Of a DNA stretch of 64,000 nt, positions 1 to 52,558 are shown one piece after another. Within the stretch, counting starts at the first letter, position 1; the number at the start of each line of letters is the position of its first letter. The notes beneath the pieces were generated by a model that saw nothing but the letters and a program-made list of their open reading frames with translations, was not told where the DNA came from and did not search any database. This DNA comes from Pavona decussata. Taxonomy: Eukaryota. The stretch covers positions 2,852,001 to 2,916,000 of the forward strand of contig CDRNST010000195.1 in NCBI GenBank assembly GCA_977016875.1, given 5' to 3'. The translations under genes were made by a program, and so were the position numbers.

Positions 1-125
1 ACAAAAAAATCCAGCACCTGACTATAACTCTGTTATGAATACATCAATAAACATAATATATGGAAGTAATTGAAATTGATTCCACCAATAAATAAAAAGG
101 GTGAATAATGTACAATGAATTATAC

Positions 126-2660
126 CTGATAGTGATCAACGACATTTAAGAAGGTTGCAAGGAAGTCATCCTCGCTTGCTGGGCTATTCTTCATACAGAA
201 GTAAATATGTGTCCTTGTACTTTTCACTGTTGGAATTATGACATGATTTCAATTAGAGAGTAAATTCAACGGTCCAGATACATCTAGACAAGTGTAGATT
301 GCTTATTTTGTGCCAACATTTGGGAATAGGGATTAATAAAATGAGGTAGACAAGTATATGACAAACTTTTGTCAGACAATTCATAGAACCACTTTGTCCC
401 CTCATCTCTCTGTGGACCTGATGCAACTTTCTTTCATATCAAGCCGTTTTTTCAGTAAGAAGGACGCTGAAAACGGTGCACTGTGTGACCAAGAGCTCTG
501 CGTGGCGGCGCACTTGTTTGCTGAGGAGATAAACACAGAGTCTGATTTGGTTGGAGAAAATTTGGCCACCAAAGGTGACGAACTTTATTTTCAAGATCTG
601 CCAATATATAATAAACTAAATATCTCTTCAGCAAAAGGTGGGGGGAAAAACCGCCACACCCAGTAAGACAAGAAAGAGAAACAGTAGGAAGTAATTCGCA
701 GGCAGGCAGAAGTGGAGGTGGTGGAAAGATGCTGAAAATTGGTTCAAACCAGCGATGTGAACGACATGATGGTGAGCGATCAAAAGGAGGCGAGCACATG
801 GAAAAGCGCTCCTAAGAATTATATAGTGCGGAACGCCTTAAATTCTGATTGGCTGGAAATTAGATAGGCTTGGACCCTGGCGCCTTGGCCTGCAAACCAT
901 TATCAAATGCCTTGCCATAAAATCCCATTATGATGTCATAACGTGTCTTTCATGGCCTTAGTCACTGATTTTGCGCCTGTCAATATAGAAATGTTTGTTT
1001 GATCATAGAGCAATACAATAGGTTACCAGTGAAAGCATAGTTATGTAACTGGCTCTAGCAATTGATCTAAAAAGCATACCGTGCCAAGAATCAAAAGAGT
1101 TCAGTATTCTTTTAGTGAAATTCTAGTTCTTTAGCTGGAGGACAAAGTCGTGTGCAACTTCAGAAACGTGAAACCCTATAGCAAACAAAACATATATCAC
1201 AATTAAGGCTGATGTTTCAATATTGCACCATATTTTATGCCATCTTAGTACTAATAGTTCCATGAATAAATATACCTTGTGTTTCTATGAGGAATGTCAA
1301 ATTTCCTTTGTCATTGGAACCGTGCAGCTTACTGCTGATGTCTCACTGGCCTGACTCCAGTTCAAAACACCAACAACTTTTTTGGTCCTACCAAACATAG
1401 TGATTATTATTAAGCAAAGAGACATATGACAGGGATTGAACCAATCCCAGGTAAATAATAAATTATACACTGAAGGCAGCTTACGAAAATGAGAGAGCTG
1501 ACACAGTTGTATGCCCTACTGACCAAGAGGAATCATGCCTGGCATCAGTAATCACACACTACAAAACAGAATGGTTAGTGTCATGACAGTCCACGGCCTC
1601 TTCTTTTACAAGCTCCCACAATCACAGTCGACAAAACAAGAAACAAAAAATGCAACTTTTGAACAAAAATGAATTGCTACCTCTCCATTAGCAAAATAAC
1701 CAGGGCTATTCTTGATCTCCTCTTGAGCAGCATGCAAAGACTCTTCACAAACCCTCTTTACCACAGTCATGTACTGGAGCTTCTTCAAAACTATAAATTT
1801 TGAGAATTTTATTAAAAGAGTATTAAGATTTGTCCCAATATAAACAGCATAACAGATAAACAATTTATTGTGACACAGTCAAACCTCAAGAGCAAAACTA
1901 GAGGAATAACAGGAAGTAATACCAGGAAAGGTATGTGGTAAATATAAGCACATGGTTGCTAAGGACAAGTCAGATGTACCTGCATAAGTGAGATGGTCAT
2001 TTGATGAAATAGTTCCCCACGGAGGTTTAGTAGTATTTTGTAAACAAAGCAAATAAAGTGTCTAATCTGTATCAAAAGTTTTTTTACCCTCTGAACCAAT
2101 ATTCACAGCTTTACAGACACTGAAATACTGAGTTTCTGTCAACCCAGTAGTCAATGAATCATTCTACAAAAGAAATGTGTAGTTTTCAAACAGTAAGCTT
2201 ATTTATGCTCTCTTCAAATGCCCCTTATATACTTCAGAAAATTGAATAATACAAATACAAACCATTATACGAAAATTAAAATCATCCTACCTCATATTCA
2301 CATGGTATTTTGTTGTAGTTCCTCCCATTATTGGGGATGATAACCACTTGATGGAGTCACCACACATACAAAATATATTGATGGAGACTGCATGACCTTG
2401 CCTATTGAATGATAGAGAATCAGACTGCAACAAATTACCACAGAAGCAACTTTTCGGCAACAAATCCGTAGCGAAAAATGAAAATAAAGTTCGCAGAGCT
2501 CCTTCACTGCACAGGTAGATCTGATCACCTTCTGTTGCTGCGGTGGAAAGTCCAAAAAGCTGAGAGGGACGACAGATGACAGGCTAAGACTTAATCTTGT
2601 CAATCTTGCTAGACTTTCCCTTCTTTGCTGCATCTTTTCTTCAATTGCTAACAACGTTGC
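126..2660 (-). pseudogene. Spliced DDE transposase pseudogene (Kolobok/Mutator-like, DxxH type), 8 exons
   Basis: Exons read by hand with matching splice phases: ~2660-2291 (..CFCGNLL..GHAVSINIFCMCGDSIKWLSSPIMGG..KYHVNMR), 2163-2067 (MIH..TTGLTETQYFSVCKAVNIG; donor mutated to AT), 1790-1681, 1558-1485 (CVITDARHDSSWSVGHTTVSALS), 1387-1276 (TKKVVG), 1175-1080 (EVAHD..NSFDSWH), 976-367 (GAKSVTKAMK|KVASG..KWFYELSDK, split by an insertion), 226-126 (KSTRTHIYFCMKN..FLNVVDHYQ). Several stops and frameshifts. Confidence 0.8.
438..945. mobile_element. 508-bp insertion splitting transposase exon 7
   Basis: Flanked by the 8-bp direct repeat TCTTTCAT (430-437 and 946-953). Removing it rejoins AKSVTKAMK to KVASGPQRDEG, with a residual 1-bp offset. 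No TIRs seen. Confidence 0.6.
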
Positions 2661-2704
2661 TTTCGCTGTGAATGGCAGTACCCTAATAAAGAAAGAAAAA
2701 AATG

Positions 2705-2895
2705 CACCCACATCACTTTTATGTGGGGAACAACAGGTCCTGGAGTTCTGACAAAAAATCCTCAACTTTACCAATATTTTATTATGGTTCTTTGTACACG
2801 ATTTGATATATCAGTCTGAAATAGAAACAACAAAGGGTTTTATACTAGAGACCGTTTTTTAATCCAGTTACCAAGGAAAGACCAATATGAAAGAA
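2705..2895. repeat. ~190-bp dispersed direct repeat, copy 1 (copy 2 at 5657-5845)
   Basis: Shared blocks such as GTTCTGACAAAAAATCCTCAACTTTACCAATA and TATACTAGAGACCGT..TAATCCAGTTACCAAGGAAAGACCAATA. Confidence 0.9.
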
Positions 2896-3064
2896 GTGTA
2901 AACTAATAATAAAACTCGAAATAAAATGTGCTGTTTTTCATTTTCGCGAAAATTAATTTCTTAAGAATGTAATTTTGCACCCAAATCGCGAACATGAAGA
3001 CCCGCGAAATATGCCGACTTTTTTTCACAAAATTAAGTGCCCACGAAAATTAGTACCAATACAT

Positions 3065-3297
3065 TTTCTTTGGTCGAATAGTGGTAATGCGCACTCCACT
3101 GCAGTTGATTTCCCTGAAACAGGGTCCCTGACAGCAAGTGTTGGTGGAACACCACCCATAAGGTCACATAACCGCTGAAAGTGAAATGCCATTGCATTCC
3201 CTCCAATAACCAGAAGTGCTGCAGCTATATCTTGACCATAGAGTGAGTCAAGATTAGAAATCAGTAGTTAGAGGCTTACACCCTGAATGGCAATACC
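3065..3297 (-). pseudogene. P-loop NTPase (Walker A) exon of a putative DUF927/Cch-like helicase, copy A
   Basis: Acceptor ttttttattag at 3298. Reads ..LYGQDIAAALLVIGGNAMAFHFQRLCDLMGGVPPTLAVRDPVSGKSTAVECAL. Walker A at 3103-3129, first G mutated to R. In-frame stop near the exon start. Confidence 0.7.
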
Positions 3298-4160
3298 CTA
3301 ATAAAAAAGAACTAATATTTTGTATAAGAAGGTGGGTGCTGCAGCTGTCTTGGAAAAAAGTGAAACACTGAAACTTGGCCACCTTCATCAGTGGCGAATG
3401 GCAAATTAACTTCATCCACTCATAATAGGGTGACGAGGCAGGAAAAAGTGTTGTGCAAAAAAATGACTTTTATTCTAGCTAACTAGCATGGTTATTCTAG
3501 TCAGTCTCTTAAGAAAAAAGCCACATACGGAAGAGAGCAGTGTACAAAAATCAGATACAAATATCTCAATAGAAGCGGCTTATTGTGTCCGTATAGTTAT
3601 GTAGACATCTCAGGCCCTTAAATGTGTGTGTATATAAACACCCTTTATGCTATGTAAACGAAGTTATCTGATTCACTCATGGTGAACATTTAAAGTTACC
3701 TGATTTCTTTTCCATAATCAGCTATCTGTCTGCAAAGAATATTGTGATGCTGACACAGGGCATTTGCTACCCCTGATATCTGACACACCTGCAGAAAAAA
3801 ATTATCAAGGGAAAAAAGAACCACAAGTACTTTTATAATTGTGTATCTAGAACAGCCACCCTCGCAAATGAACAGCTCTAGCTGTCCGCCTCCGAGAGGT
3901 GCGTGTTTTTAATGTTGTAAATTGTTTTAACGGCTGGAAGAAAGTAACAAAATTGTGACAAGATCTTTCTTGTTATCTGAAAATTTTGCGTGGTTTTGTT
4001 CTGTTTATAAAGGCGTATTGTACCGCATTAAGAAAACAGGATATGGCATGGAATGCTCTCCAAAATGACGAAGGTTTTTTTCAGTTGAAGATGTGTGGAG
4101 TAAATTCTTTCGTTTCACTTCCCTTCCGTCTTCGTTTATTTTCTATCTTAGGGGTGTATT
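3088..4160. repeat. ~1.05-kb segmental duplication, copy A (copy B at 10838-11875)
   Basis: Collinear, visibly diverged match throughout, including the Walker A exon and a second exon (3788-3700, VCQISGVANALCQHHNILCRQIADYG). Confidence 0.92.
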
Positions 4161-4716
4161 TACACTGGTTTAACTGTGTTACCTAAGCTGATTTCCTCTC
4201 ACATTCTGCATCCATAGCATCAATTTCGTCTGAGAGGCCTTCTATATTGGTTGTATCACTTAACTGCCCCACAAATATTTGGTGCTTCAGAACGTATTTT
4301 TTACCCAGTTCTAGATACTTGTTGGGTACAATACAGTCGGCCTTAAAGGCATTTAGAAAGGTCCCAGAACTGAAAGGTTTTGCCGGGAAGCCTTTCACAT
4401 CTAAAACACAGTGAAAGGGTCCTTCCCATCTCGATGGAACTCCAGTCACTTGAAATTTTAAACGCAGTTATCACAACTGGGAATTCTGCAGTGAGAAACG
4501 AGACAAATAGCAACGATTAATGTAAGGTAATGGTGAATGTAAATCTGAAGTAAACAGTAGAGGTGGTCTAGAAGAGTTTGAGAGCTCATGTGAATACTTC
4601 CAAACTCCATTAGTAGTTGCTACCAACTTCTATTTAGTTGGTCTCCTGAGTCTGATTTTTTTAAACCAGGGTTTAAACAAAATGTAGGCGTGGCTCCAAC
4701 TTGTTTTTCCTCCTAA

Positions 4717-5530
4717 GGGACCGATCGTTTATTACGTCCTAGGGGGGGGCGGTGTTTTTTGAGGGGGGGTAATTTTTTTAAATGAGCTCTTTTTGGGGGG
4801 GTAATTTTTTACCTTGTACGAAAAGTGAGGGGGGTAAAATTTTAAGACATACAAAAGGTACCAACTAAATGTATTTAGCAATCATTCTCATCAATCATAG
4901 AGTTGGTAAAATCGACTAGAAACTTCTCCATATCGCTACTATTCTTCAGAGCGACAAAGATCTTGCACGTAATAGGTTGAGTAATGACATGGACATGCAA
5001 ACCGTGTATTTCATCAAGCAGTTTATCTGGGCAAAAAAATTGACTAAAAGACGAATAGAGATGGTAGGCTTCTTCAAAATCTATATATCTACATCCATAC
5101 ATCGAATGCTCCTGTACTGCTCTCAAACCCCGAGCTGCTTTGACCTTCTGTGTACCTTCTTTTGACGAGTGAAGAATAGACTCCTGCAATAACAAAACAT
5201 CGTTATTATCAAGACATTCAAGAGATATTCTAAGGTACATTTCCTTACTTGAATTTCGCCTAACTTCTGATTGTTTCTCTTGCCAGTTCAGATTCAGAGA
5301 GCTAGCGACTCGCATGTAACCAAGCGTTGTGCCCAGGAACTTCTCAACAATTCAACCACAAGGCCAACCATTGGGGGGGGGGGGGGAAGGGGGTAAAATT
5401 TTCAAACTGTCATTGTAGTGGGGGGTAGAACTTTTGTTTAAAAAAATTTTGGGGGGGTAAAATTTTCAAACACTCGATTTTTTAGAAAACCACCGCCCCC
5501 CCCCCTAGGACGTAATAAACGATCGGTCCC
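4717..5530. mobile_element. Non-autonomous TIR DNA transposon (Zator- or PIF/Harbinger-like), 814 bp
   Basis: ~38-bp TIRs GGGACCGATCGTTTATTACGTCCTAG(G)nCGGTG. 3-bp TSD TAA (4714-4716, 5531-5533). Repeated subterminal GGGGGGTAA(A)ATTTT motifs. Internal 146-aa ORF 4875-5315 (-). Confidence 0.9.
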
Positions 5531-5656
5531 TAAGAGGTGCTAAAAGCAGTTCTCTCTGAAATATTTCCTGTACCAAACTGACGTTAAGGGTGCCCCTTGT
5601 CATTTTTTATTTAATCAACCAATCAATGAAAATTTGACCTCAAGAGATGTGGCGAG

Positions 5657-5845
5657 CACCCGCATCACTTTTATATGGGGAACAACCGGTCTCGCAGTTC
5701 TGACAAAAAATCCTCAACTTTACCAATACTTTATTATGGGTCATTGTATGGATTTGATATATCAGTCTGAATTAGAAACAGCAAAGGGTTTTATACTAGA
5801 GACCGTGTTTTAATCCAGTTACCAAGGAAAGACCAATACGACAGA
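5657..5845. repeat. ~190-bp dispersed direct repeat, copy 2
   Basis: Matches 2705-2895 (see copy 1). Confidence 0.9.
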
Positions 5846-6499
5846 ATTAAGTAACTAAGTAAGAGATTCTCTGAACACATTTTAAAGTAATGAACTGTGA
5901 CTTAACCTACCAGTTAATTTGGTAGCCGGAAGAGCAATTGACTTGCCAAGGTTTAACACTGTAGATGGCCTAACTGGCAATGTGTTGGGGACTTGTTGCA
6001 TAAGTCCCTTCAGTTGAAAACATTGAAAATGGCGACCTAATTTGTATTAAAATAGTATTCATAGATGTGGATCCAAATATGATGCATAATGGTGCTCAAG
6101 GGGAGTATGATACAAAAGGTCGTCTCCCAAAACCTATATATAACATCTGAAGAGCCGTATATTCTTATAACCAAAAATGACTGTAATAAATTATTGTTCT
6201 TTCAATTACAAAAGAACAATGCATAAAAGGGAATCACATTGATGCAAGAGTAATGAGGAAAAGGTGTGAAAACTTTCTGACTCGAGTAAAATAAGGTCTT
6301 ATTTGTGCTTTAGTTACCTTCATTGCAAAATGGCACAGTGACTAGAAAAGAATGTACTAGCCTAAAAAATCCCTTTTAAAGAACAGATTTCAATGAAAAA
6401 CCATGTTTCGACTCTGTACCTTTCTACTTTTACTACTTTTGTATTTATCTCAGAACATTTGAGAAAATGCACCTGTGTATTCATTCAGCTACTGACTGT

Positions 6500-6790
6500 T
6501 TTGATTACTAGAAGAAACGGACTTGCCTTTTCAAATTGTCGGAACAGATCCTCAATCAATCCTTCTTTCAGTGCCTTTTACGTGAACTGCACCGGTGAAA
6601 CAGTCTCTTGTGAAATGCAAGGAACATATGCCAACCTTGCCTTTTAGAATTAAGTTTTTGCGATGTCTCAAAACAAATTTTTTCCACTTTGTAAGTACAC
6701 TGCTGCTCGGAGGAGAACCATGCATCGAAATTCCCATTTCTAAATCAGCTATTCGCTCATAATCTTGGACTACACGTCAGCGTGGATGCA
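6500..6790 (-). pseudogene. THAP zinc-finger domain remnant (transposase N-terminus)
   Basis: VVQD..GISMHGSPP..LTKWKKFVLRHRKN..GICSLHFTRDCF..GSVPTI carries the THAP W, CSxHF and AVPTI-like signatures; stops present. Confidence 0.8.
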
Positions 6791-7887
6791 TTTTGAAGAT
6801 TGAATATACGCAAAAACCAACTTGACAATCTCACATCTCATAGATGGCATAGGAAATAAGCCGTGTTTACTTTGAGCATTGGGCATACGGCGTCAGACCC
6901 CAGGCGGTCCAGCTAGACCCAACCCTTTTCCTTGCTCATGATCATTTGTCGGGAAGGAAGACCGTAATGATCTTTTGAAGTTCACTTTTGCATCCTTTTG
7001 AGAATACGGTCTTATGAAAACATTGCAGGAAGATTCTTATTTACATGCAGTTTTCAAAGTCTGAAGATTCCTGTTTTCAGCATTTTCGTTGACAGTTGAA
7101 TTTGTGGAAACTGCGGAAAAATGTCCTGTTCTGGTACATCGAAATTTGTAGCAACTATTATACTAGAGGAAAGCTCTATACACGCATTGCAACATATAAA
7201 AAATCCAGCTTGGGTTATTTAAAATCCAAGCGTTGACGGAAGTAAACACATGAGTAATTTTAATATATATTTTTTCAAAAGCTGCAGTAGTCACGTAATT
7301 AAAGTTAAGTTATCATTGTAGAACCTTGTCAGTATGCATTATTGTCATAGGTTAACTTCAACTCACAATATCAAACAGGAAATACAGTTATTTAGGATTA
7401 ATCACTGCATGGTTAAATTGCACCATCAAGACTACTCTGTAGATCCCTATCCCCCTTATATTAGTTTAAGGGAGATAATATGCCCACATTTTGTATGAGC
7501 CTTATAAGTCACATACCTGGCATCGGCCCTTTCTTCTGAAAAGCTGAACAACAAAATTTTACAAAACAAAATAAGGTAAATTGCAATACAAACAATGTTT
7601 TCCATGCTGAATAGGAAAAGATTCTGTACCCATCTTTTTTTACATTTCCGTCTTCTAAAGGGGATTGTGTTTTTTGTGTTTTGCTCAATGTTTAGATCAT
7701 TTTTCATTGCACTGCATGTGAAGTTAATTTAGGTGTTGGCCGAGGTTAGTGTTTAATCTTTACGACCATACAATCTCTCTCATTTCATCTTTCACCAAGC
7801 TAGGTCAGAAAATTGCCGTTCTCAGCAATTTAAAATAGGTGGCTCCAGCTAGAAACAGTCAATTCAAATTCTTAAATTAATAATAAA

Positions 7888-9288
7888 ATACATCCAAAAT
7901 ACCCTTATCAAGTTTCTTTAGCCAGTCTTCAGGGATAGCACGTCGTCTTACATGACTCCCTTTGAACTGAGTACCATTGAAAACCAATTTGATGCCATTG
8001 TATCCAATGCCCTGGCTCCTTATGAAAGCCTGGAGGGCATCCTCTTGTCCACCTCGGTTTATGAATTGAAGCATCTCTCCAACTTTACAAGCAAATGCTT
8101 CACCGCAATACGTCCAAAATACCCTTATCAAGTTGCTTTAGGTAGTCTTTGGGGATAGCACGTCGTCTTACATGACTCCATGGCAGTGAGTACCATTGAA
8201 AACCAATTTGATGCCATTGCATCCAATGCCCTAGCTCCTTATGAAAGCCTGGAGGGCATCCTCTTGTCCACCTCGGTTTATGAATTGAAGCATCTCTCCA
8301 ACTTTACAAGCAAATGCTTCACCGCAATACATCCAAAATACCCTTATCAAGTTACTTTAGGCAGTCTTCGGAGATAGCACGTCGTCTTACATGACTCCCA
8401 TGGCACTGAGTACCATTGAAAACCAATTTGATGCCATTGCACCAATGCCCTGGCTTTTTATGAAAGCCTGGAGGGCATCCTCTTGGCACTGAGTACCATA
8501 AAATACCAATTTGATGCCATTGCATCCAATGCCCTGGCTCCTTATGAAAGCCTGGAGGGCATCCTCTTGTCCACCTCAGTGTATGAATTGAAGCATTTCT
8601 CCAACTTTACAAGCGAATAGTTCACCGCAATACATCCAAAATACCCTTATCAAGTTGCTTTAGGTAGTGTTTGGGGATAGCACGTCGTCTTACATGACTC
8701 CATGGCAGTGAGTACCATTGAAAACCAATTTGATTCCATTGCATCCATTGCCCTGGCTCCTTATGAAAGCCTGGAGGGCATCCTCTTGTCCACCTCGGTC
8801 TATGAATTGAAGCATTTCTCCAACTTTACAAGCAAATACTTCACTGCAATACATCCAAAATACCCTTATCAAGTTGCTTTAGGTAGTCTTTGGGGATAGC
8901 ACGTCGTCTTACATGACTCCATGGCAGTGAGTACCATTGAAAACCAATTTGATGCCATTGCATCCATTGCCCTGGCTTTTTATGAAAGCCTGGAGGGCAT
9001 CCTGTTGTCCACCTCGGTTTCTGAAGTGAACTATCTCTCCAACTTTACAAGCAAATGCTTCAGCGCAGTACATCCAAAATACCCTTATCAAGTGTCTTTA
9101 GGCAGTCTTTGGGGATAGCACATCGTCTTACTTGACTCCCATGGCACCGAGTACCATTGAAAACCAATTTGATGCCATTGCATCCAATGCCCTGGCTCCT
9201 TATGAAAGCCTGGAGGGCATCCTCTTGTCCACCTCGGTTTCTGAAGTGAACCATCTCTCCAACTTCAAAAGCAAATGCTTCACCGCAA
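7888..9288. repeat. Tandem array, 219-220-bp unit x6 plus an 84-bp partial duplication
   Basis: Anchor C(A/G)TCCAAAATACCCTTATCAAG at 7891, 8111, 8330, 8633, 8852, 9071 (spacings 220, 219, 303, 219, 219). Confidence 0.97.
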
Positions 9289-9332
9289 GTGCACTTTTGT
9301 GCAGAGATCTTGGGATTAAAAAAGGACATGAC
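9060..9332 (-). pseudogene. Terminal coding exon (source of the 219-bp array); putative C-terminal winged-helix-like domain of the helicase family
   Basis: Acceptor ctttcag at 9333-9339. Phase-0 frame VMSFFNPKISAQKCTCGEAFAFEVGEMVHF..GIKLVFNGTRCHGSQVRRCAIPKDCLKTLDKGILDVLR*. The original end ILDVFYY* survives at 7877. Confidence 0.55.
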
Positions 9333-10599
9333 CTGAAAGTTTGATATTTAAGGGGTTTGCTAACAAATTAGTAGTGCATGGTGACAATTTATACAAACAG
9401 CTTTAATAGTGCAGATTTATTCATTGAGTAGGTATCTGTTGTATTTAATATGTAGGTCACGACTTAGCATTCTAATAAAAATTTAACAAGGAAACATTGT
9501 TCTTGATGTGTTGTAGTCTAGCCATGTGGGAAACAATATTTATTTCCTGGCTGCAAGAAAACCGAATCACTTTAAAAGTTTTATAGACGCTTGGGTGACA
9601 TGCAACTTTCGGTTAAAGTGATTAAAATAGCTCGCAAAGAAATCGAATTATCTTATCAGGTAAACTGGCAAGACATGTTCATACATCTGGTCTTTATTTC
9701 TTAACTTCTCACTCATTTAAAAATAATAAGTATTTACATCACTGTTGATAGGATCAACAATTCCACTGACAGTGCTATAAATTAATACTAAATTCAAGAA
9801 AGTGATTTCAGTAAATGTAATGTGCTAATGTATTGCAGTGGCCCTCAGAAAATGGATGTTTTAAAAACATTCTCAATAAGTAATGAACTACGTATAATAT
9901 TCTTAACCTTGCAAATATGGTTTTTCCTGATAAAGATCATATTGATTTTTTTTCTTTTTTTCACAGAAAAGGTTTGGAAATTATTTGGAACAAAGTGTAT
10001 GTGAGTGTATGATACAAATAGAGTATCATTCTTGTGCAGCGCCCAGTTGGTCTCAAGTGATTTGTTCTGTTCTAATCTCATCTTCAGGCACTCTCAAGGA
10101 CTAAACAAATGAATCTCAACTCTGAACTCAATCTCTGCTCCTTTAACCAGTATGGTTTGTTTCGGCATCAGTGGGTGTATGATTGTAAGTATACTCTATT
10201 ATTAAGGAAGGCACCTAAGTCCTTTGGAACTGCTGCTGGAAAGGCAGTAATATTCTGAACAAGTGATATTATCATATATTGTATTATGTGAAGGCCAGAT
10301 ACTAAAAGTATGCCAAAGATGTGACATTTAGAAAAATAGGGAATTATAGGGTTGTTGAAGGGCTACCTATTCTTGGTTTTCATGTGACATAGTCATATTC
10401 CAAAATTGGAGCTGAGCAATATCAGACCCTTCAGGCATCCCTGTCCCATTTTTTTTTTGTAGAAGTGAATGGGCTCATGAATACTTATTAAAATAAATAA
10501 ACTTTTACAAAAATAAATAACAGTTGTAAGATACATAATTTCAGACTACCACTACCCTTAACTCCTTAAGACTTTTGTCAAAATTCAAAATTTAATATT

Positions 10600-10800
10600 T
10601 GAACCTTAAACTATATAGTGAGACATGACTCTGAATTCTGTAGGCTTTCTGTCCATGTAAAAAATCCGCTGATCACGGCAAATAGATGACGATACGTTTT
10701 ACTCACCCTGAAGAAGGAAGGTTATAGCCAGCTAAAGATAGAAAATGAAAATGAAAATGTTAATTTTTGCGCCTTTGGATTTTATTTACTATGTAACACT
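10600..10800 (+). mobile_element. Degenerate Penelope-like pseudo-LTR fragment with decayed hammerhead core
   Basis: ..GATACGTTTTACTCACC-CTGAAGA-AGGAAGGTTATAGCCAGC-TAAA-GATAG resembles the CUGANGA / stem II / GAAA layout of Penelope hammerheads; stem II and GAAA are mutated. Confidence 0.45.
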
Positions 10801-10814
10801 TGATATGTATCTTC

Positions 10815-11044
10815 ATCAAGTTGGTTGAATAGTGCTAATGCACACTCCACTCAGATGATTTCTCTGAAACAGGGTCCCCAACTGCAAGTGTTGGTGGAAC
10901 ACCATCCACAAGGTCACACAACTGAAAGTGAAATGCCATTGCAGTCCCTCCAATAATAAGAAGTGTTGCAGCTTTATCTTGACCATAGAATGATTCAAGA
11001 TAATAAATCAATAGCTGAAGGCATTCACCGTGAATGGCACTACC
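10815..11044 (-). pseudogene. P-loop NTPase (Walker A) exon, copy B
   Basis: Acceptor at 11045. GSAIHGECLQLLIYYLESFYGQDKAATLLIIGGTAMAFHFQLCDLVDGVPPTLAVGDPVSEKS.. (10853-10879). Consensus with copy A is GDPVSGKST. Confidence 0.7.
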
Positions 11045-11875
11045 CTAATAAAAAAATATATATTTTGTATAATAAGGAGGGTGCTGCAGCTGTCTTGGGA
11101 AAAATGAAACACTGAAACTTGGCCACCTTCATCAGCGGCGAATGGCAAATTAACTTCATCCACTCATGATAGGCCTACGACACAGGAGAAGGTGTTGTTG
11201 AAAAAATGACTTTGATTCTAGCAAACTAGCATGGTGATTCGAGTCACTGTCTTGAGAAAAAAAAAGCCACATATGGAAGTGAGCACTGTACAAAAATTAG
11301 ATACAAATTTTCCTAAGACATACTGGTTATTGCTTCGGTATAGTTACTTAGACGTCTCAGGCTGTCAAACCTGTGCATATATAAACACCCTTTTTCCCAC
11401 TTATGAAGTTATCTGATTCAGTCACGACAACCATTTAAAGTTACCTGATTTCTTCTCCATAATCAGCTATCTGTCTGCAGAGAATATTGTGATGCTGACA
11501 CAGGGCATTTGCTACCACCGATATCTGACACACCTGCAAAAAAAAATTATCAAGAGAAAAAGGAACCACGCAAATGAAGAGCTCTAGCTGTTTGCCTCCG
11601 AGAGGTGCTTGTTTTTAATGTTGTAAATTGTTTTAACGGCTGGAAGAAAGTAACATAAAAATTGTGACAAGATCTTTCTTATCTGAAAATTTTACGTGGC
11701 TTTGTTCTGTTTATAAAGACGTTCCGTACCGTATTAACAAACCAGGATATGACATGGAATGCTTTCCAAAATCACTAAGGTTGTTTTTTTTTTTTTCAGT
11801 TGAAGATGTGTGGAGTGAATTCTTACGTTTCACTTCCCCGCCGTCTTTGTTTATTTTCTATCTTAGGCGTGTATT
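10838..11875. repeat. ~1.05-kb segmental duplication, copy B
   Basis: Collinear match to 3088-4160. Confidence 0.92.
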
Positions 11876-13199
11876 TTCGAGATTGGCTTGTGTTAAGCAA
11901 AGGACTGACCCCATATTGATTACTGCTTTGTTAAAAAAGATCACTCATTGTGGGGCTCCCGAGGTGTATTCATCCTTGAATTTTTCATTACTGGAAGTTT
12001 TCTCCGTATTGCTTAGAAGTTCAGGCTCCAATGAGTCCACATCCTGATCAAGCAGATCACATACTGGTCGCAATGGCCTTTAAAATATACTGGTAGGTAC
12101 TGATCTTTGGCTGGTACTGTCCACAACCTCTTGGAATTAAATTTGACAGAATTCCGGATTGTGTTGACATGTCTCTCCATGTCAAATAGTATTGTTTACT
12201 AAAAAAAAAAAAAACAATATAGATGCAATGAGCATATGTAATCAGATGGTGACAACTGGAAAAAGCTCAAGTAGTTATTATTAGTGTGGATAAAATGCAT
12301 GTGAAATAATTATTACTCCCTGCTTTCACAAGTATACCATTTGACTATTTCTAAATATCATGGGTGATTAAAGGCTCGCAGTATTGTTTTTTTAAACTAG
12401 ACATGAAACGTTGCCAAAACAATTGTACAATTAAGAAATTAACGCAGAAATTTTGTCTCATAGTCATTTGTCAACCATGAAATAAACAAATTATATCAAT
12501 AGATCAAACAATGTATTAACAATGTCCTGGACCAAACACCACTTGATCCATGCAGTTTGGTTTTGCTGTTTGTGCTCCATTTACTTGTAAGTTTAAATAC
12601 GGGAAATTGTCTACAAATCCAGTAGATAACCTCGATCATGCTACGGTAGCATAAATTATTGATCGGACAATGCTATAGACCAATAGAGCAAAAATTCTGC
12701 GCTCCCCATTGTAATCCTGCCCAAAATCCAAACAACTTAGCCAACATGCAAGAAGAGATAAAAAGATGACTGGTGAGGCATCAACAAATGGTGTCCACAA
12801 AATGACTGCTTACGACCCATGTGCATATTGGGATATCTAATACCCAGATCTCCCACGAGTGGAATCACAGGAAGCCTTAATTGGTACCACATTTGGTGAT
12901 ACCTCTTCTTGAAAAATTTTAATTTCAAGACTAGTACTGAAGGATGAAATGGCTTTGAAAGACGCCGCACTGAGATCATTAACAGGGTGACTACACGGGT
13001 AAAATCCAACTTACTCTTACCATTTGTTGCAAATCTGTTCGGTTACCAGAGGGTATGAAAATACGCACGTACTTCAACTCAAGGTCAACGACATAAGGAC
13101 TTTGTTTTACTGGTTACATACTTTTACTGATTTTTGTCTCGATTACATACTGATTACATACTTTTACTGATTTTTGTTTCGATACCATCTCTAAAGACT

Positions 13200-13585
13200 A
13201 GCCTGTATTCAGGTTGGTTGTCCTCCTCACCACTCGCAAAGGTGTTCTTCTGGACAAGTTGGAAAAGAAATCCATCAGAGCTTCCAGCCTCAGGGTTTTC
13301 TGCCACATACCCGGTACATTTGACAGTAAAGTTCATTATGGGCAGGAACTGCCTACCCTTCTTCACCAAAGACCCTATCTCTCCATTGAATTCAGTAAGC
13401 TACTTATCTTCAATTTTTCTTTTTTTGTGATCTGGTGGGCTGGAATGATCCTCTTCTTGAGAGATATCCATCTGTGGATTTCTGTGATCAAATTCAAGCT
13501 GGGACATCTTCTCATTAAGTTGCGCTTGCTTTGGCTAGAAAATTGGATTAAAGTAATTCTTGAATGGACGTTTAAGGTGGCTGCC
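13200..13585 (-). pseudogene. Exon encoding a DUF927-like N-terminal beta-rich segment
   Basis: Acceptor ctctag at 13586. LTEFNGEIGSLVKKGRQFLPIMNFTVKCTGYVAENPEAGSSDGFLFQLVQK resembles the E.nG....p+sNF..i...v start of DUF927 domains. Stops and a frameshift upstream. Confidence 0.4.
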
Positions 13586-14263: not shown

Positions 14264-14880
14264 CTAATGTTGGATGTTTTCTTCGAAGTATTTGACTATT
14301 GTAGCCGAAATTTGTATCTTGGTGGTGACTTGTGGTGATGGCGATGGAGATGAAGTGGGAGGTTTTGAAAAGATCCCAATAAGTCCTTCTTTTCCAAACT
14401 TGTTGTACACTGTTTTCAGATCTTAAAATGCCAGCCCTCTTCTGAATATTGTTTCAACTATGTTCTTCTTTTAGGTATTACGGATAGTAGAGATTATCTT
14501 TGAATGACTGCATTAAAATGTAGTGGCGATCTAGATACATCACATCCTTAGCCACATGGCTTCCATTTACAAGACCGGAGTTCTCAATTATTATTTTCTC
14601 AAACTGTGAAACAAAGGTTAAAAACTGTGACAATACGTACTTCAGAGGTAGTGTACTTACTTCTTTGTTGTCTTTCTGAAGTTTCCTTTCACCACTTATT
14701 TTGACTCTTTTAAGTTTTAAACCTTTGAAGCAAAATAATCGATGTCTTGCACAGGTAAAATATGTGTTAAAAATTGATGAAGGCCAGACAAGTCGGCAAC
14801 TGATAATTGACAGAGCTCAGCAGATTTTCGAGTAGTATTTGTCTCGATGTCAAAAAAAGATGTTGTAACATTAGTTTTCA
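14264..14880 (-). pseudogene. Internally deleted DEDDh 3'-5' exonuclease (PML-C/Exuperantia-like), transposon-associated
   Basis: ExoI motif FFDIETNTTRKSAELCQLS..HILPVQDIDYFASKV, and C-terminal GLAFxDLKTVYNKFGKEGLIGIFSKPP..PQVTT..IVKYFEE*. Middle missing; frameshifts. Confidence 0.7.
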
Positions 14881-16199
14881 TCGTATTTGAATTTTTTTTT
14901 TGCCAGTGGTCGTGCAGTGTACTGTGGAACATTGCTTTCAATTCTTTTAGTGTACTTGCAGTCACTGTTATGGACATGATGTTTAGGCCAAGGTTTAATC
15001 CAATACCTGTTTCACATGTTTTTACTTTCTTGCAGTTTGTTTACAGTTTTGTCTGCAAACAATTGTATATTGCAAACTATTGTGAGAATAGGTCTTGGTA
15101 TCCCTGTCCCAACATCCTTTTTTGACAACAATTGTATCGCTGAATTTTCAGTGAACACCAATGTTGTGAATATATTTCCTGTCTACTCGGACCAGTCTGA
15201 CACTTTGAATATGATGTTTCTGCATCGCTACAGTAACTTTAGGGACCTTCGGTGCAGGGACATATACAAATGACTGCCAGATGTCATCCAACTCTGCCTG
15301 GGCAACAATGGCATTCCTGTCTCGTATGTTAACTGATTCAAATGACAATTTCAGTGTCCTCGTGCATAGCAATTAGTCGCTGGCATTTCTTTAGGGCAAG
15401 TTGTAATTGCTCATGAAAACTACAACCCTTGAGTTTACTTTTTTTCAGCAAAACACTGTTCTTCGAAATGTTCAATTTCACCAACTTTCATCTTCTTTCT
15501 CCAGTTAAAGTTCTTCACTGTAACCTGGTCCTCCAAGTATTGCATCCACAAATCCATATCCATCTGAGTCGACGTTTACAACAACAGATCCACCAGCTGG
15601 AAATCTAGAGCAATTGCACACAGCAGTTGTGACGTCCTACTAAGCAATAAATCTAATTTATTTTCAAATTCATAGATTTCCACGGGCTGCATTGACGTTG
15701 CCATAACAGAAAGATTAGCAAGCATGTGCCACTGATGTATCAAAGCAACTGCGTTCTCACCATCAAGCTACGGAAATATAAAACATGACGAGTTAAACAA
15801 ACGGAACAGCTATCCGCTTAAAGCTGCTTTGTGATTTATACACACTTCATAAACATAAATTATATGAGGTTATATATGCTAAGATGTGCAAAGTCTTAGT
15901 TTTACCTTCAAAATAGAGCTGGCTGTAACTTTGAGTACTGCTGGCGATTGAACATTTTCAAACTGCATTACTGTTTGCAGCGTGTTCGGAAACAGCTCCA
16001 ATCTCTAATTTTTCAGCTCAACTGGAAAGTTCAGGTGCCTGAGAAGAGTCCTATACTCTATAAATGGCAGCATTTCCGAAGACTCCCTAATGTCCATGGC
16101 TAAATGCATGTAAAAACCTCGAGTTGCCACGTTGGTACCTTGAAGACGTCCATTATAAAATGAACTTCATGTGAGGTCCAGCCGTTTGATAATATAGTT

Positions 16200-22554: not shown

Positions 22555-23674
22555 CGTTTTACGGGCTGGTTGTAGGCCTACCTTTTGAAGTTGGAAGGAC
22601 AGCACCGTGTGAGCATAAAACCTCGGTGCAGTGCGTAAAGGGTTAAAAATGCCATCCCAGGTGATAAACAACATGCCTGCTAAATTACAAATCAATGGCT
22701 TTCAACGGTACTTTTGCTCTCAACCTGTTAAGTTGAAGGGAACATGCTTAAAATTGCTGTAAAGTACCTTTATTGGTTAGGTTTTTGAGTAAAATTTTCA
22801 CAGAAACCTACCTTTACTCAACCTCCTTGTGATATTAAAATGCTGCGAATGATACGGGTGAGTTGTTGTGCCCAAATTCAGTAACGATTTGTTTCACCAA
22901 ATATTCAGTTAAAAGTGAAAGAGATGCCATTTCTTATATTACCTACCATAAATGTCTGTTGTGCCTGTGTGCTCTTCTCCTTTTTCTTTCCCCTCAAAAG
23001 AAGTTCTTCCTGGTAAATTTTTCATTACCGACCAAAACTTCATCTTCGTTCGAGTTTGCTTCCCCATACGTCCCAAGCCCGACAAGCTGGACAAATCTGC
23101 CACAATGCAACTTTCCTGTGGCTTTTCACCTGTTAATTGAGCTACAATGCTACTTACTCAACAGAAGGACGAGCCATTTTTTTACGAACAGAACGATGGA
23201 TGTTGCTGAAAAACAATGATGTTGGCTTGATAAAGAGGACAGAGTTAAATGGAAAAAAGGCAGCAGTTGATTGGCTTTGTTGTGTAAATAGTGTGAAAAA
23301 AATGAACCTTGAACCTTGACAAAAAGCCTTTATGCACGGAGGGATTCGATTTGAAAAGAAGCAGGAATAAACTTGCGTTTCAGTGTTGTCGCATGTTTTG
23401 ATCTCGAACTACCATTGGACAAACCACCTCCTTCCCAGGGCTCCCGCTCAAATATCCCAAATAAACAACTTCTGTGCAACTTATCTCTCGACAAACAATG
23501 ATTTCAGCACAAGAAATCAACAGAAAGCGAAAGGACAGAGAAAGAAAATCAGCACTTGTACCATGTCATTGCCATCTTTGTAGAGGAAAATTGTGTTTGG
23601 CGAAGAAAGTCCGCTGACACAAGACCATTTTTAAACGAGATGCAGACACTGGTGTTGGGGATTCTAGTGCCTAC

Positions 23675-24235
23675 CATACGCTCATCTATAGCTAAATTTT
23701 GTCTAGGTTGATACAAGGTAACACATCTAGATTTTATAAATGACTCCACATTACGCAATTTATAAGATTTATCCTCGGTTGCTGGATCAACAACATGTAA
23801 AAGGGCCATAAGGGCTTTGGATCTAGTTCTGGACATGAGTGCTCTTGCCCAGAGACCATGATACAGGGTCTTTATGCTCCAATACTTGTCTACATCACCC
23901 ATAACCTTGACAAGACCAAAATAAATGAGAAGCGCAATCAGTTGCTTGATCTCGTCAGCTGTAGTGTCTTGCCAGCTACCATCAGGTCTTGTATAACTCT
24001 GATGGGACCCCGAATAAATGTGCTCATTAGCATGACTATTAATGTGGTCATCTATATTATTTATCATTTCTACGGTAAAAAAAGGTAAAAAAAAACTCAA
24101 CAGCCTTTGTCATGGTGCCCCTGAGTAGACGTTGTCCAAAGTGAATTCCAGCTGGCCGTGAAGGGGTAAAGGGAGGAATGGGATTACCGGCATCTGGATC
24201 ATTATAAGAATTGAAGGGAACCGGATAACCCAGAG
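23675..24235 (-). pseudogene. Truncated piggyBac transposase (N-terminal half; different family from 27831-29558)
   Basis: PPFTPSRPAG..EFF, WQDTTADEIKQLIALLIYFG, YWSIKTLYHGLWARALMSRTR..LLHVVD, LYQPRQNLAIDERMV (first catalytic D), then abrupt break. Confidence 0.9.
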
Positions 24236-27393: not shown

Positions 27394-29829
27394 CCCAATG
27401 CGGTCCTGGGGCCAAAATCGCGCGTGACACCCCTAAAGCCGGCGATTTTCGATTCTTGCTTGCGTTACGCGAGCGTTAAATATTAACCATATGCGCAGTA
27501 AACACACACACAAGATCGGGTTACAAGACAAAGTTTATTCAAAGCACATAACTCAAAAGGCCGAAATATGCCAAAATATCGAAAGAGAAAGGCCGAAAGG
27601 GTGTTCAAAAGCGAATGTGAAAATCAAAAATCGAAAATTTAATTCGCCGCGCGACATTTTCCGAAATGAAATAAACAACGCGGACAAAAGACAGTGAAAA
27701 GAAAGCCGAATTATGCATAATTAGAAGCCAAACAAGACGGCTAATAATAACCAAATTATATTTCTTTGAGTATTTTTCAGGATCACATAGTGGATTTTAC
27801 GACAGTCGAGGACTCAGGAAACGAAGAAGTTCAACCCAAATTTACCGCATGAAAGATCGCAAAACAATTCACCTTGCACAAAGCCACCCCGCATTGAACG
27901 CATTCAGTGGAAGTTTCGACAGGCCGCCCAGAAGGAGTCTTAATTCCCACCCTCTTACACCTGACACATTGTCTCTTCCTACCCTTAATTTTGTCAATGA
28001 AATGCTTACCTGCATTTTCCTCCCCGAGTGAAAGGGTCTGAATTTTTTTGCGCTTTAGTGACTGCGCGGCCGAAACGCTAGATGAAAACCCCCCGATAAG
28101 TTGCTTCGCAAGCCTAGTGCGAAAATCAACCTGCTTTAATTTAGCCCTCCCTGCCCCGGTAAGAAAATGGTTCTGTAAAATAAAAGCATTACAAATTGAA
28201 ACATCGATAGAGAACCAAAACAAATACTTATACCATTTCCTAGAAGAACGACCCACAGAATAATACTTACGGAATTGATCGGCGAGGTCAACTCCCCCCA
28301 TATTTTCATTGTAAAGGCCGATCACGGCTGGCTTGCTGACCTGCTGATTGTGTCTTCGAATGACAACATCAGGGGTATCTGGACTTACATTTGAAGAAAT
28401 GACACTGACATCCCGTTTGTCATGCCATTTCGTGAAAACTAGCTTACCTTTTTGCCTAACAACCTTTTGTCCGGGACGCAATTTTTGCCGAGCACATGGC
28501 GGCAAGTCCTTGCGATTTACCCGGACGGTCGCGCAAGCGAAAGTCTTCTGAACCCGCAAATGTTCCATCAACCTAACTGAACTGAAAAAATTATCGAAAT
28601 ATACATGGTGGTTCCTGTTCATAAAAGGGGTGATCATCTTGGTGACCACATCATAACCCAACCCATGGATGCGCTGAAGCCTGGGGTCCTTACCCAAATA
28701 AACATCAAAATTCAACACGTACCCGTTGCTTGAGTCTGCGGCGATCCAAACCTTGATCCCGTATTTCGTTGGCTTTGCCGGCATGTATTGTCGGAAAGAA
28801 AGCCTACCCCTAAATGGAATCATACCCTCATCGACTGAAAGATTTTTAGTGGGGCTAAAACTAGTTTCACAATTTTGCCTAACATAATTTAGCACGGGTC
28901 TTACCTTGTAGAGACGATCATAGCCAGGATTTCCACGGGCCACTTCTTGGGTCGCATCGTTGAAATGGAGGAAACTACTTAATTCCTTAAACCTATTCTT
29001 AGGCATTACTTTCTTAATCCCTACATTACCAAAAAAATCATCAGTTGACCAGTACTGATCTAAACTGGGCAGCCTAACCATACCCATAATAATATTTACA
29101 GCAAGGAAAGCTTTAAGTTCAGCGAGCGTAACCGGTCGAAATTTAGCGAGGCGCGCAGGGGAATCGGCAAGCTTTTGGCGAGCGTAAAGGTTGGTTTCTT
29201 GCACTATTTTATTCAACAAATCTTCCCCCACAAAAGCTGAAAAGAAATCTACGGGTGTGGGGTTATCTGGAAGCTGGAACTTGATGCCGGAAGCCTCAAC
29301 AAAATCGGGAATACGAAAGGGAGAAAGTTGATCGGACCACCGAAGTTCATCGGGATCTGCGTCTTCATCACTTACCTCTTCTTCTGCGTCTTCCTCACCT
29401 TCGTTTTGATCCTCTTCGCTCTCTGACTCACTGAAATCGAGATCGGAGTCACTGTTAGCATTTTGTTCGTGATTTTCAAACCCATAGAAACTTCCCTCGT
29501 CCCCTGAGTCCTCGAAATCTGACGCGCTATCGGATACGTGATCAATGTTATCAGCCATCGTAATTCGATCGCGCAAGCCAAAGACAAAGCGGCGAAGTCA
29601 AGACCTCGTGGCTCCTCTCATCACCTGTCAAAAAATGCGCAAAACACGTCATCTGATTGGTCAATTCACCTTGTTGGTATCTATGACAACAAAACAGGAC
29701 AAAAAAACTCAGGGAGGGTAGGGAGGACTCGTTTATTTTCGTGCGCTTTTACGGCCGGTTTTGGCCGGCATGGCCTTTCATGGGGTGCTTTTCGCGCGGC
29801 CGGTTTTGGGCGCCTCGGACTGCAATGGG
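27394..29829 (-). mobile_element. Full-length piggyBac transposon, 2436 bp
   Basis: TTAA at 27390-27393 and 29830-29833. TIRs CCCAATGCGGTCC vs CCCATTGCAGTCC (11/13). GC-rich subterminal repeats CGGCCGGTTTTGG. Single intact ORF. Confidence 0.95.
27831..29558 (-). CDS. piggyBac transposase (PGBD4-like), intact, 575 aa from the ATG of MADN
   Basis: Acidic N-terminus; catalytic triad SVDEGM, YFDNFF, GGVDLAD; KPTKYGIK; C-terminal Cys-rich domain CVRC..CVQCGVALC..CFAIFH; no disruptions. Confidence 0.97.
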   Translation of the reverse strand: MADNIDHVSDSASDFEDSGDEGSFYGFENHEQNANSDSDLDFSESESEEDQNEGEEDAEEEVSDEDADPDELRWSDQLSPFRIPDFVEASGIKFQLPDNPTPVDFFSAFVGEDLLNKIVQETNLYARQKLADSPARLAKFRPVTLAELKAFLAVNIIMGMVRLPSLDQYWSTDDFFGNVGIKKVMPKNRFKELSSFLHFNDATQEVARGNPGYDRLYKVRPVLNYVRQNCETSFSPTKNLSVDEGMIPFRGRLSFRQYMPAKPTKYGIKVWIAADSSNGYVLNFDVYLGKDPRLQRIHGLGYDVVTKMITPFMNRNHHVYFDNFFSSVRLMEHLRVQKTFACATVRVNRKDLPPCARQKLRPGQKVVRQKGKLVFTKWHDKRDVSVISSNVSPDTPDVVIRRHNQQVSKPAVIGLYNENMGGVDLADQFRKYYSVGRSSRKWYKYLFWFSIDVSICNAFILQNHFLTGAGRAKLKQVDFRTRLAKQLIGGFSSSVSAAQSLKRKKIQTLSLGEENAGKHFIDKIKGRKRQCVRCKRVGIKTPSGRPVETSTECVQCGVALCKVNCFAIFHAVNLG

Positions 29830-49531: not shown

Positions 49532-50730
49532 CCTGAGTAGAAATTATGAATAAACAGTAGGTAAAAAATTGATAAATATAAAATCACAGTAAAATCCTAA
49601 GATAGAGTTAACGATGTAACAAAATTAGATGAAATGGTTCACAAAAGCTTCTTAAACCCAGGTTATTTTAATTTCTTATAGACACTGGAATAGTGTTTTT
49701 TGCTTGCCTGTCCTTCCATCCTCATTATCTGAATGGTCCAAAGAAAGACATCCAAAGTTGTATGATGTCCTGATTTATCTCCTCTCCAAATAATCTGCTT
49801 TCACTTTGAGTTCTGTAGCACAGGTCACCTCCTCGATGTGCCAAAAAAGGTCTTTAGAAGTCTACACCATGCCAAAGTGAGGGCAATTCAGACCCACAAT
49901 TTGAGGGCATTTCGGACCAGCAATTTGACTACTTTGAATGGCTCTATCTCGTGTCCTTTTAAACGGTTTTGCTTCCTTTTTTTGGTGATATGCATTAACT
50001 ATTGCTTATGTAGATAAAGCTGAGTGAATTGAATTTGCCCGTTTATTTTTAGCGTTACAATTTGTTAAGCGTATGCAGACTTTAGAGTACCTTTTGGAGA
50101 GCAAATAAGCTGCTATCTTGTTTTAAACTTGTGTTAGCCACTTATGGAGCTACTGTGGTGTAAAAAGATTGGTTTCCTGGTCCCCCCCCCCCCCCCCCTC
50201 TCACTTTGATGTAATCATTGAGGGTATTATCCTGAGACCTGATGCTTAAATGGTAGTATCAAAGGTCATTCAGGGGGTTTCATCAAATGACCAGCTTGAC
50301 TCATTGTCGCCAGGATCATATGGCACACCTGTTGCTTTTTAGTGGGGCACTTGCCGGGGGCTGGTTACCCCAGCTCGTGTGGTATCCCTAACTAGAATGA
50401 ACAGGGGCCGAGGCTTATGGAAACGAAACGAAGATAGTTGACTTTTTACAAAGAGGTAAAATATTTACAATTTTATCTACATGACCGTATTTACAATAGA
50501 TAATTGGAATAAATTATGTTAATGTTTACATTTCTTTATTCATTCATATGTTAATTCACTTCAACTGTGTTCAGTGAATTCTTTCAACTCAACTTTTTTT
50601 TGTTTTTCTTTTTTAATCCTGTTCTTCTTCTTTTTCTTGTGAACTCAACGTCTTAGACAAAGTTACATATGGTTGGCCGCAACAGGTGATTTCTCTAAAT
50701 GGAATGGCGACGAGTGCGTTGTGGCTGGGT

Positions 50731-51645: not shown

Positions 51646-52558
51646 TTTCCCAGTCTAAAAGTTAAGCGACTAAAACTAAAAAAAAACTATTTAAGATATT
51701 GAGCTCTAGTTTTCACCAAGAGTAATATTAAACAGCATGCTTTCATTGTGCTAAGGTTAAGTAGCAGGTGTGAGAACTACCTCATGTAATCGGTAGCCAA
51801 ATAGCTTTTGTTAAAAGTTACATGTAAAATTCATTAAAACTGACGTGCAAACAAAATGTCAACTTCCTAAGACCATAAAAAAAACCGATGTGGCTAAAAA
51901 AATCCAAAGCTTAGTTCGCATTAAACGCTAACCATAGGACTAACTTTCCTGCTGTTACCGGCACTTGGTGAGATGCTTCCCTTCAACAATTCCTTTAAAA
52001 CCTTAGAGAGTGGAGCAAGAAAGGTAAAAAAACCCAAAGAGAAAATTCAATTGTAAGGCGTATCGTTGAAAGGAAACACGAGTCTGCAATTACCTAGCCC
52101 GCAAATCCAATATTTTGGGCCTTTTGCAGCCACAAAGCAAAGCACCAAAATGGTTTGCGATTACTTGAACATTTTGTTGGGTTCCCACACAGAAAACCAA
52201 ATTCGAAATGTTTTTTCAAGAAAACCCCTGAAAGAAAGAAAGAACACTTGTAAACGCCAAAGTTCACTGTATCGAAAGCTGAGTGGAAGTTGATGCTTGC
52301 CTTCATGGGTGTTTGAACATTTCAGCTTTTGCGCACGCTAATAAGTATGTTACCACACTGTGATGTTTTGAAATGTTTTGGAGTGAAACGTTTGTTACGC
52401 TTGCATAATTTACTCTTTTAATCAATGTTTGGTCCGTTAGAGCCGATACAAAATGGGAATCATGACTACTGTTTGTATTAATGTTGAGCAAGGCAGCGAG
52501 AAATTGCCATATATAAAAACAATCAGCATTAGAATATTCACACATTCCTCGCGCTTAC

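Follow-up and report, generated by a model that had tools for sequence, protein, structure and literature searches.

A probable relic of an intron-bearing DUF927/Cch-like helicase gene among transposon debris in Pavona decussata

Introduction

On the minus strand of one contig of Pavona decussata, exons of a putative AAA+ helicase lie close to a spliced DDE transposase and a fragment of a THAP zinc finger. Are these the parts of a single animal mobile element that couples a transposase to a replicative helicase of the DUF927/Cch type, as the original prediction supposed, or the remains of separate families that have come to share one crowded locus? The stretch analysed, called the window here, is 64,000 nucleotides long (C195:2852001-2916000 of a 602-Mb eukaryotic assembly), has a G+C content of 36-45% and contains no runs of N. 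Positions given without a prefix are those of the window.

DUF927/Cch helicases drive the replication of bacterial islands (SCCmec, SaPIs) and of phages, and in the literature searched all 19 papers with a mention of DUF927 deal with prokaryotes or their viruses. The concept of a transposon with its own helicase is shared with Helitron (PIF1-like, superfamily 1) and AcademH (RecQ, superfamily 2). Unlike those superfamily 1 and 2 enzymes, however, the family represented in the window is an AAA+ ring helicase, and in this genome no linkage of it to a transposase has been demonstrated. Our reading, to which we assign a probability of roughly 0.8, is that the region 2.66-14.6 kb holds a dead and rearranged intron-bearing DUF927/Cch-type helicase gene of an animal lineage, and that the transposase, the THAP fragment and a high-copy reading frame lying among the exons are independent debris.

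Helicase exons of the window

The minus strand was read by stop-to-stop translation, and the helicase exons were searched singly. In the direction of the gene, the first recognizable pieces are two exon-like blocks at 14342-14579 (minus strand), one of them with an in-frame stop, which match contig C33 of the same genome (tblastx, joint E 1e-20) and have no Pfam match. They are followed by an N-terminal beta-domain exon with the motif PIMNF at 13208-13399 (minus strand), which is 35% identical (E 9e-7) to residues 35-97 of P0179, a 714-amino acid gene model of Sanderia malayensis that aligns to three window exons. In the structure model of P0179 these residues form strands E32-41 and E47-56, and the exon has two paralogues on contig C33. 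The next exon, RLWTVPAKDQYLPVYFKGHCDQY, at 12061-12141 (minus strand), is 56% identical to residues 108-134 of P0179 (E 3.8e-6).

The exon carrying the Walker A motif is present in two copies within duplicated blocks on the minus strand. Block A spans 3070-4161 and includes copy A of the exon (about 3058-3296, with the P-loop codons at 3106-3114); block B spans 10821-11876 and includes copy B (about 10838-11043). With a family profile that was built without window sequences, the two score E 2.4e-19 and 1.4e-12, respectively. The blocks are 1.1-kb DNA duplicates, 83% identical by BLAST and 88% by global alignment. A third, truncated copy, consisting of a polypyrimidine/AG acceptor and the first 20-24 nucleotides of the exon, lies at a rearrangement junction at 2663-2700 (minus strand), directly adjoining the stretch of transposase-family homology that starts at position 2662. 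A search of the 602-Mb genome for the 21-mer TTATTAGGGTANTGCCATTCA from this segment gave three matches, every one in the window (2669, 3284 and 11031), and a shuffled-sequence control gave none.

The 3' part of the gene is represented by a C-terminal exon with a CxCGE motif at 9174-9335 (minus strand). It matches positions 5820-5981 of L057, a locus on a Tara metagenome scaffold (E 1e-6 by tblastx and 1e-8 in pairwise comparison), and the same motif is found in L059. Overlapping this exon is a tandem array at 7887-9288, to which no strand is assigned, made of about 6.4 units of 219 bp at 92-93% identity, the units translating to CGEAFACKVGEM... The satellite grew by amplification of the CxCGE exon together with its flank, and 9174-9335 is the founding unit. 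The array thus exemplifies a satellite born from a coding exon.

Far from these exons, at 60069-62121 (minus strand), an exon from the region after the sensor, with the motif SRVVLIPF, is present as four tandem units of about 610 bp (E 5.8e-5 to P0107). These units are fragments of another helicase copy. The block that contains them (58.4-62.5 kb) has a second copy, about 80-88% identical, 55 kb downstream (C195:2968-2970 kb, L043), and part of it is also found on C115:879 kb (L041).

The exon inventory of the original prediction was therefore largely right. Stop-to-stop translation places all the listed features on the minus strand, within or close to the coordinates claimed for them. The PIMNF beta-segment exon at 13.2-13.4 kb is backed by the P0179 alignment and the C33 paralogues, the two Walker A exons by the duplicate blocks and the family-profile scores, the stub fused to transposase sequence by the 21-mer count and the junction at 2662, and the terminal exon placed at 9332 by its match to the C-terminal exon of L057. 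The SRVVLIPF exon at 60-62 kb, supported by its match to P0107, turned out to be four tandem copies. What the inventory lacked were the exons at 12061-12141 and 14342-14579; it had also overlooked that both Walker A exons are disrupted and that the middle ATPase exons are absent, as described below.

Identity of the helicase family

A profile (A1) made from four Walker A exons of this genome was run against 1.84 billion representative proteins and gave 159 matches, mostly single-exon fragments on animal contigs. Among the matches are the Sanderia gene models P0070 and P0179, the Actinostola model P0138, and two open reading frames (ORFs) of about 320 amino acids, P0061 and P0046, on megabase-sized animal contigs. 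Three are prokaryotic proteins of 1000-1400 amino acids, P0150, P0140 and P0108 (E 1e-4 to 1e-5), each with PHROG matches to primase or primase-helicase families. At the N-terminus of P0108 there is a DUF3854 Toprim domain; P0150, from a phage-like contig, gave a weak match to Toprim_2 (E 0.019). A homologue search with P0070 under a length filter returned two Sanderia paralogues only.

In an alignment of 31 family sequences (A2), the conserved elements are an NFPxALLxLG...HYE block, a Walker A motif GxxxxGKS/T, a Walker B motif TTLGxxhDDP and a sensor-1 motif PRTTFIxSxN, with conserved positions G208/K214, D253/D254 and N292. The homology between animal and phage members extends upstream of the ATPase. 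The fold was modelled on A2 with AlphaFold2 for residues 25-470 of P0179, with a mean predicted local distance difference test score (pLDDT) of 70 and a predicted template-modelling score (pTM) of 0.62. When this model was compared with the PDB by Foldseek, the SCCmec Cch structure 5dgk (E 5e-9) and the SaPIbov1 Rep structure 8tch (E 6e-7) came out on top, followed by MCM, poxvirus D5/E5 and NrS-1 proteins at E around 1e-5. VIA-align gave Z 16.1 for both 5dgk and 8tch over 325-365 residues (model residues 20-446), and these superpositions take in the N-domain as well as the AAA+ core. Against MCMs the values were Z 12-13.4 over about 260-280 residues, confined to the AAA+ core. A search of the viral models in BFVD had phage proteins annotated as DUF927 domain-containing as its top matches (E 1e-12), and by the language-model features of the ESM Atlas P0179 scores 0.98 to DUF927 clusters. 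In sequence comparison, the A2 profile reached 5dgk among the PDB sequences at a weak E of 0.59, phmmer of a phage homologue against the PDB sequences gave nothing useful, and Pfam, NCBIfam and PHROGs had no match to the eukaryotic family members.

The model thus supports a predicted two-domain fold, a beta-rich N-domain followed by an MCM-like AAA+ core, that is closest to Cch and SaPI Rep. Because the PDB, BFVD and ESM matches agree while the Pfam hidden Markov model stays silent, we file the family as DUF927/Cch-like by predicted fold, a placement that the models support, and not as a Pfam-detectable member. The original assignment of the exons to a DUF927/Cch-like, MCM-related AAA+ helicase holds at this level, in the PDB, viral-model and language-model searches alike, and the check that had been proposed for it, AlphaFold with Foldseek, did find a Cch/MCM-like AAA+ fold when the homologue P0179 was used. 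As for MCM paralogy, MCM2-7 and archaeal MCM have a similar AAA+ core, but their N-terminal domain is unmatched and their score is below that of Cch and Rep. The family members are not MCM paralogues.

The likeness to Cch (5DGK) and SaPIbov1 Rep (8TCH) extends to the order of motifs, namely Walker A, Walker B (DD), sensor-1 Asn and SR. Sequence identity, however, is only 10-12%, the animal genes have spliceosomal introns and an animal host, and neither a cognate primase nor an origin or integrase partner was found for them. The phage and plasmid primase-helicases that join Toprim (DUF3854) to DUF927 (about 950-1400 amino acids) were detected by sequence from the profile of the window's Walker A exon and share homology into the domain preceding the ATPase. 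The animal proteins differ from them in being without the zinc-finger and Toprim primase half, and the phage genes sit in the replication modules of phage-like contigs. By analogy with the solved relatives, Cch and SaPI Rep, and from the predicted fold, intact members of the family would form ATP-driven hexameric rings, with a beta-rich N-terminal collar on an AAA+ core equipped with Walker A (GxxxxGKS/T), Walker B (hhhhDD), a sensor-1 Asn and an SR arginine finger.

Decay of the window copy

The two full-length Walker A exons of the window have been disrupted in different ways. Copy A has an intact P-loop and an in-frame TAA at 3268-3270, at a site that is an open codon in copy B and encodes residues in L057 and Sanderia. 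In copy B, GKS has become EKS and the frame is lost just after the P-loop. Exon and non-coding flank are each 88.2% identical between blocks A and B, and since exon and flank have diverged equally, the two have drifted neutrally after the duplication. Exons for Walker B, sensor-1 and the arginine finger were sought in the first 16 kb by regular expression, profile, tblastn and tblastx, and none was found; nor did any method used reveal a middle ATPase exon in the stretch from copy B (10.8 kb) to the C-terminal exon (9.3 kb). The only counterpart in the window of the missing exons is the post-sensor array at 60-62 kb. Walker A, intact in copy A and EKS in copy B, is thus the only one of the ATPase motifs present in the window.

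That the locus is still a working gene, some of whose exons have escaped detection, is scarcely credible. The P-loop of copy A is intact and the 13.3-kb and 12.1-kb exons have open frames, as in such a gene they would, but against these stand the stop in copy A, the frame break and the G-to-E change in copy B, the equal divergence of exon and flank that suggests neutrality, and the satellite and high-copy insertion between the exons. RNA adds weak evidence at most: of 17 runs listed, none recorded as RNA, four are probably RNA, and their contigs do not touch the exons and show no joints at exon borders, reaching only 244 bp of intron and, at 9.4-10.0 kb, a repeat. Judged from its sequence, the window copy of the helicase is dead, and the locus does nothing today.

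Transposase and THAP fragment

The neighbour on the other side of the junction is a multi-exon DDE transposase (motifs DARHDS...DSWH) at 1-2662 (minus strand), 5'-truncated and internally deleted, with 88% DNA identity, introns included, to three loci elsewhere (L017, L018 and L019; 3.2 kb compared at each). Its homology to the family stops at 2662, whereas the full copies L018 and L019 run on into an exon 1 of their own (MAEENSQS...). The window transposase also lacks 184 bp (L018 positions 1760-1944), which shifts its frame. Because it is 5'-truncated, the element has no left terminus at the window, and the first exon gave no Pfam match. Since the transposase is cut at this point and the two families occur independently, we read the sequence 2662-2681 as a rearrangement scar.

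The idea that helicase exons, spliced DDE transposase and THAP domain make up one large, possibly self-replicating animal DNA transposon draws on the adjacency of the parts, their common orientation on the minus strand and the exon stub joined directly to transposase sequence. Yet the transposase is cut precisely at that joint, and its full copies bring their own first exon. This exon has 21 matches in the genome. Apart from that of the window, none comes within 900 kb of any helicase locus, the remaining 20 having no helicase exons in their neighbourhood, and this transposase is absent from the other helicase loci. The 21 transposase matches and about 15 helicase loci therefore coincide only in the window, and the co-occurrence in independent copies that a composite element would predict was not found. 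Comparison of the window with all fetched helicase loci by tblastx and tblastn detected no similarity in transposase or THAP, and L057 has no transposase within 13 kb.

The THAP fragment fares similarly. It lies at 6555-6776 (minus strand) and matches Pfam PF05485 with E 1.2e-4, at 23.2 bits just under the cut-off of 23.9; this was the only match, a borderline one, when Pfam was run on all exon pieces of the window. The match spans profile positions 17-62 of 87, and the N-terminal Cys pair is missing, so that a THAP domain at this place, as originally called, would be present only in part. Its paralogues occupy 22 genome loci, none of them at helicase or transposase loci.

One further locus favours an association. 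On contig C45 the relic of a helicase gene is followed, 5 kb downstream and in the same orientation, by a DDE transposase with the motif GDGQCDSPG, and six of about 11 helicase-bearing contigs also match this C45-type transposase, mostly at a distance of 40-200 kb. Its exon (L055 3547-4497 = C45:1209547-1210497, minus strand) is open for 317 amino acids, carries the GGDGQCDSPGFSAKN motif and has 46 genome hits with E up to 1e-10. However, it has no BLAST similarity to the window transposase, and the C45 pair was rejected as one mobile unit, a 97%-identical twin on C96 being without the helicase exon.

A single transposon made of all three parts is thus very unlikely. The transposase family is independent, its loci coincide with the helicase only here, and the THAP paralogues map elsewhere, so the central claim of the original prediction is not supported. 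Its own fallback, a pile-up of transposons plus deletion, is the better reading in view of the truncation at 2662 and the separate loci: the transposase and the THAP fragment would be unrelated to the helicase, brought together by transposon pile-up with local duplication and deletion.

Related loci in this genome and beyond

Members of the helicase family have introns in this genome, and in animals the family comes in multiple copies. About 15 dispersed loci, belonging to three or more subfamilies, were found here, and every one inspected is broken or fragmentary. At C354b an internal deletion joins Walker B to the end of the arginine-finger exon; only two exons were found at C354a, and only 5' exons on C33. 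A profile search gave about ten further loci of other subfamilies (C13, C195:3.05 Mb, C45, C4, C58, C323, C11 and C51), many with stops. Among C13, C195c and C45 there is no conserved partner gene, helicase blocks being all that they have in common. The gene at positions 300-6100 of L057 (G+C 36%) is apparently intact, compact, intron-bearing and orthologue-like, with all ATPase exons in order, and serves best as a template for how genes of the cnidarian subfamily are built. Several close helicase copies are present in Sanderia (79% identity) and in the animal of assembly ERZ19489113 (96-98%).

Such a distribution might be that of pseudogenised paralogues of a host gene family, acquired horizontally once, domesticated in cnidarians and having no current or recent link to mobile DNA. 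The exon structure would fit: the exon after Walker A ends identically (...IGG) in copy A, C354a, C354b and L057, and alignments of P0179 to C354a break at the residue of that exon end. Copy number per subfamily is low, L057 has its apparently intact gene, gene models exist in Sanderia, and in this genome no transposase partner is conserved. A domesticated family, however, sits badly with at least 15 dispersed loci in at least three subfamilies, all broken where inspected, each in transposon-dense DNA, and with the close multiple copies in Sanderia and ERZ19489113. The nearest relatives, moreover, are phage and mobile-element replication proteins, and the gene of ERZ19489113 shares a repeated unit with a CxC5/KDZ-type transposase. 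We consider a purely host-gene history unlikely.

The repeated unit in ERZ19489113 is shared by three loci on different contigs, with 96-98% identity between the closest copies, L028 and L049, and in L028 the shared block is about 13 kb long. All three copies have the helicase gene together with a block (VVCYDNMCHL) resembling Kyakuja-Dileera-Zisupton (KDZ) transposases, and L028 and L050 have, by eye, a PHD-like CxxC/H motif. In the fullest copy, L028/L060, matches to Pfam CxC5 (33.5 bits) and to HIRAN (30.3 bits) both lie upstream of the helicase gene, so that compared with KDZ elements the helicase follows CxC5, KDZ-like catalytic blocks and HIRAN. At its right end the unit has a 22-nucleotide motif that is met again close to the left end, where reverse-complement copies make up a subterminal array; the inverted motif at the two ends measures 17-22 nucleotides. 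The candidate unit would extend for perhaps 18 kb on contig s7.ptg000298l, from about L060 7300 to L028 15856, and would comprise the CxC5/KDZ-like transposase, HIRAN, the DUF927-like helicase and the PHD-like motif. It is flanked by satellites, might have spread by segmental duplication, and comes from one species. Neither KDZ nor HIRAN was found near the helicase loci of the window's genome, L030, L033 or L057, and the literature on Zisupton/KDZ or HIRAN transposons yielded nothing relevant on a helicase. As a helicase-bearing element, the KDZ-HIRAN-helicase unit is a lead only. Within one copy of the unit (L050 4421-8766) there is an insertion with an ORF for a 667-amino acid Mutator-like transposase, with a SWIM finger by eye, and a 306-amino acid ULP1-like protease ORF.

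Other features of the window

Transposon debris crowds the window throughout. Placed among the helicase fragments is the high-copy repeat ORF at 4878-5351 (minus strand), which has at least 150 genome copies at up to 98% identity and no Pfam domain; one copy sits inside a 1177-amino acid open frame at C289:613647. A short dispersed repeat at 2704-2895 (no strand assigned) has a second copy at 5656-5846 with 91% identity. Just upstream of the helicase exons and on the same strand, the ORF 14717-14977 (minus strand) reads FFDIETN...ELCQLSV, reminiscent of motif I of DEDD 3'-5' exonucleases, and had no match in a Pfam search.

Further along, by eye, retroelement-like ORFs occupy 16.9-18.6 kb and an uninterrupted piggyBac-like transposase ORF of 581 amino acids occupies 27831-29576 (minus strand), with a second piggyBac-type fragment at 23549-24100. 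A RecQ-like superfamily 2 helicase gene in at least three ORF pieces lies at 54671-56715 (plus strand; Pfam DEAD E 2.8e-15, Helicase_C E 7e-10) and may belong to an AcademH-like element. A spike of GC skew (0.34) at 50000-52000 coincides with a 304-amino acid low-complexity ORF rich in Pro, Thr and His at 50731-51645 (minus strand).

Discussion

What is left at the locus can be summarized as follows. Of an intron-bearing helicase gene, the 5' exons, a Walker A exon and a C-terminal exon have survived in the window. Local duplication brought the Walker A segment to three copies, one of which is cut after 24 nucleotides by the 5'-truncated transposon. The C-terminal exon has grown into the 219-bp satellite, and the two remaining Walker A exons have been disrupted.

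Several points weigh against this picture of a dead DUF927/Cch-type gene lying among independent debris. The Pfam model of DUF927 (PF06048) matches none of the window exons at E up to 1, and none of P0179, P0070, P0061, P0046, P0150 and P0140 at E up to 10. The fold was predicted for the homologue P0179 and not for the window's own product. The absence of the middle exons was established by similarity searches, which could miss very divergent exons, and the RNA data consist of contigs. Lastly, because of the C45 pair, some recurrent neighbourhood of helicase and transposase keeps a small share of the probability.

The family itself appears to be a lineage of DUF927/Cch-type helicases in animals that has so far gone undescribed, with multiple copies in this genome, most of them decayed. 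We infer that a mobile element or virus probably brought it into animals, its source being the primase-helicase of a phage or plasmid. The wider proposal, that cnidarians and at least one other metazoan harbour an undescribed lineage of such phage- or plasmid-derived helicases which is now, or was recently, cargo or core of large DNA elements, is possible but tentative, and we would put it below an even chance.

What looks like a composite system can, as this locus shows, be made up of exon fragments, satellites and truncated transposons. Apart from a well-documented fossil the window itself has little to offer, and it is the family that merits further attention. An intron-bearing animal lineage of these helicases, if real, would mean either the transfer of a replication gene across domains and its domestication, or the existence of animal mobile elements or endogenous viruses with an MCM-like helicase of their own. 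Should the mobile-element reading prove true, these elements would add a third type to the eukaryotic transposons that bear a helicase, one with an MCM-like ring helicase, and the window locus would be its fossil.

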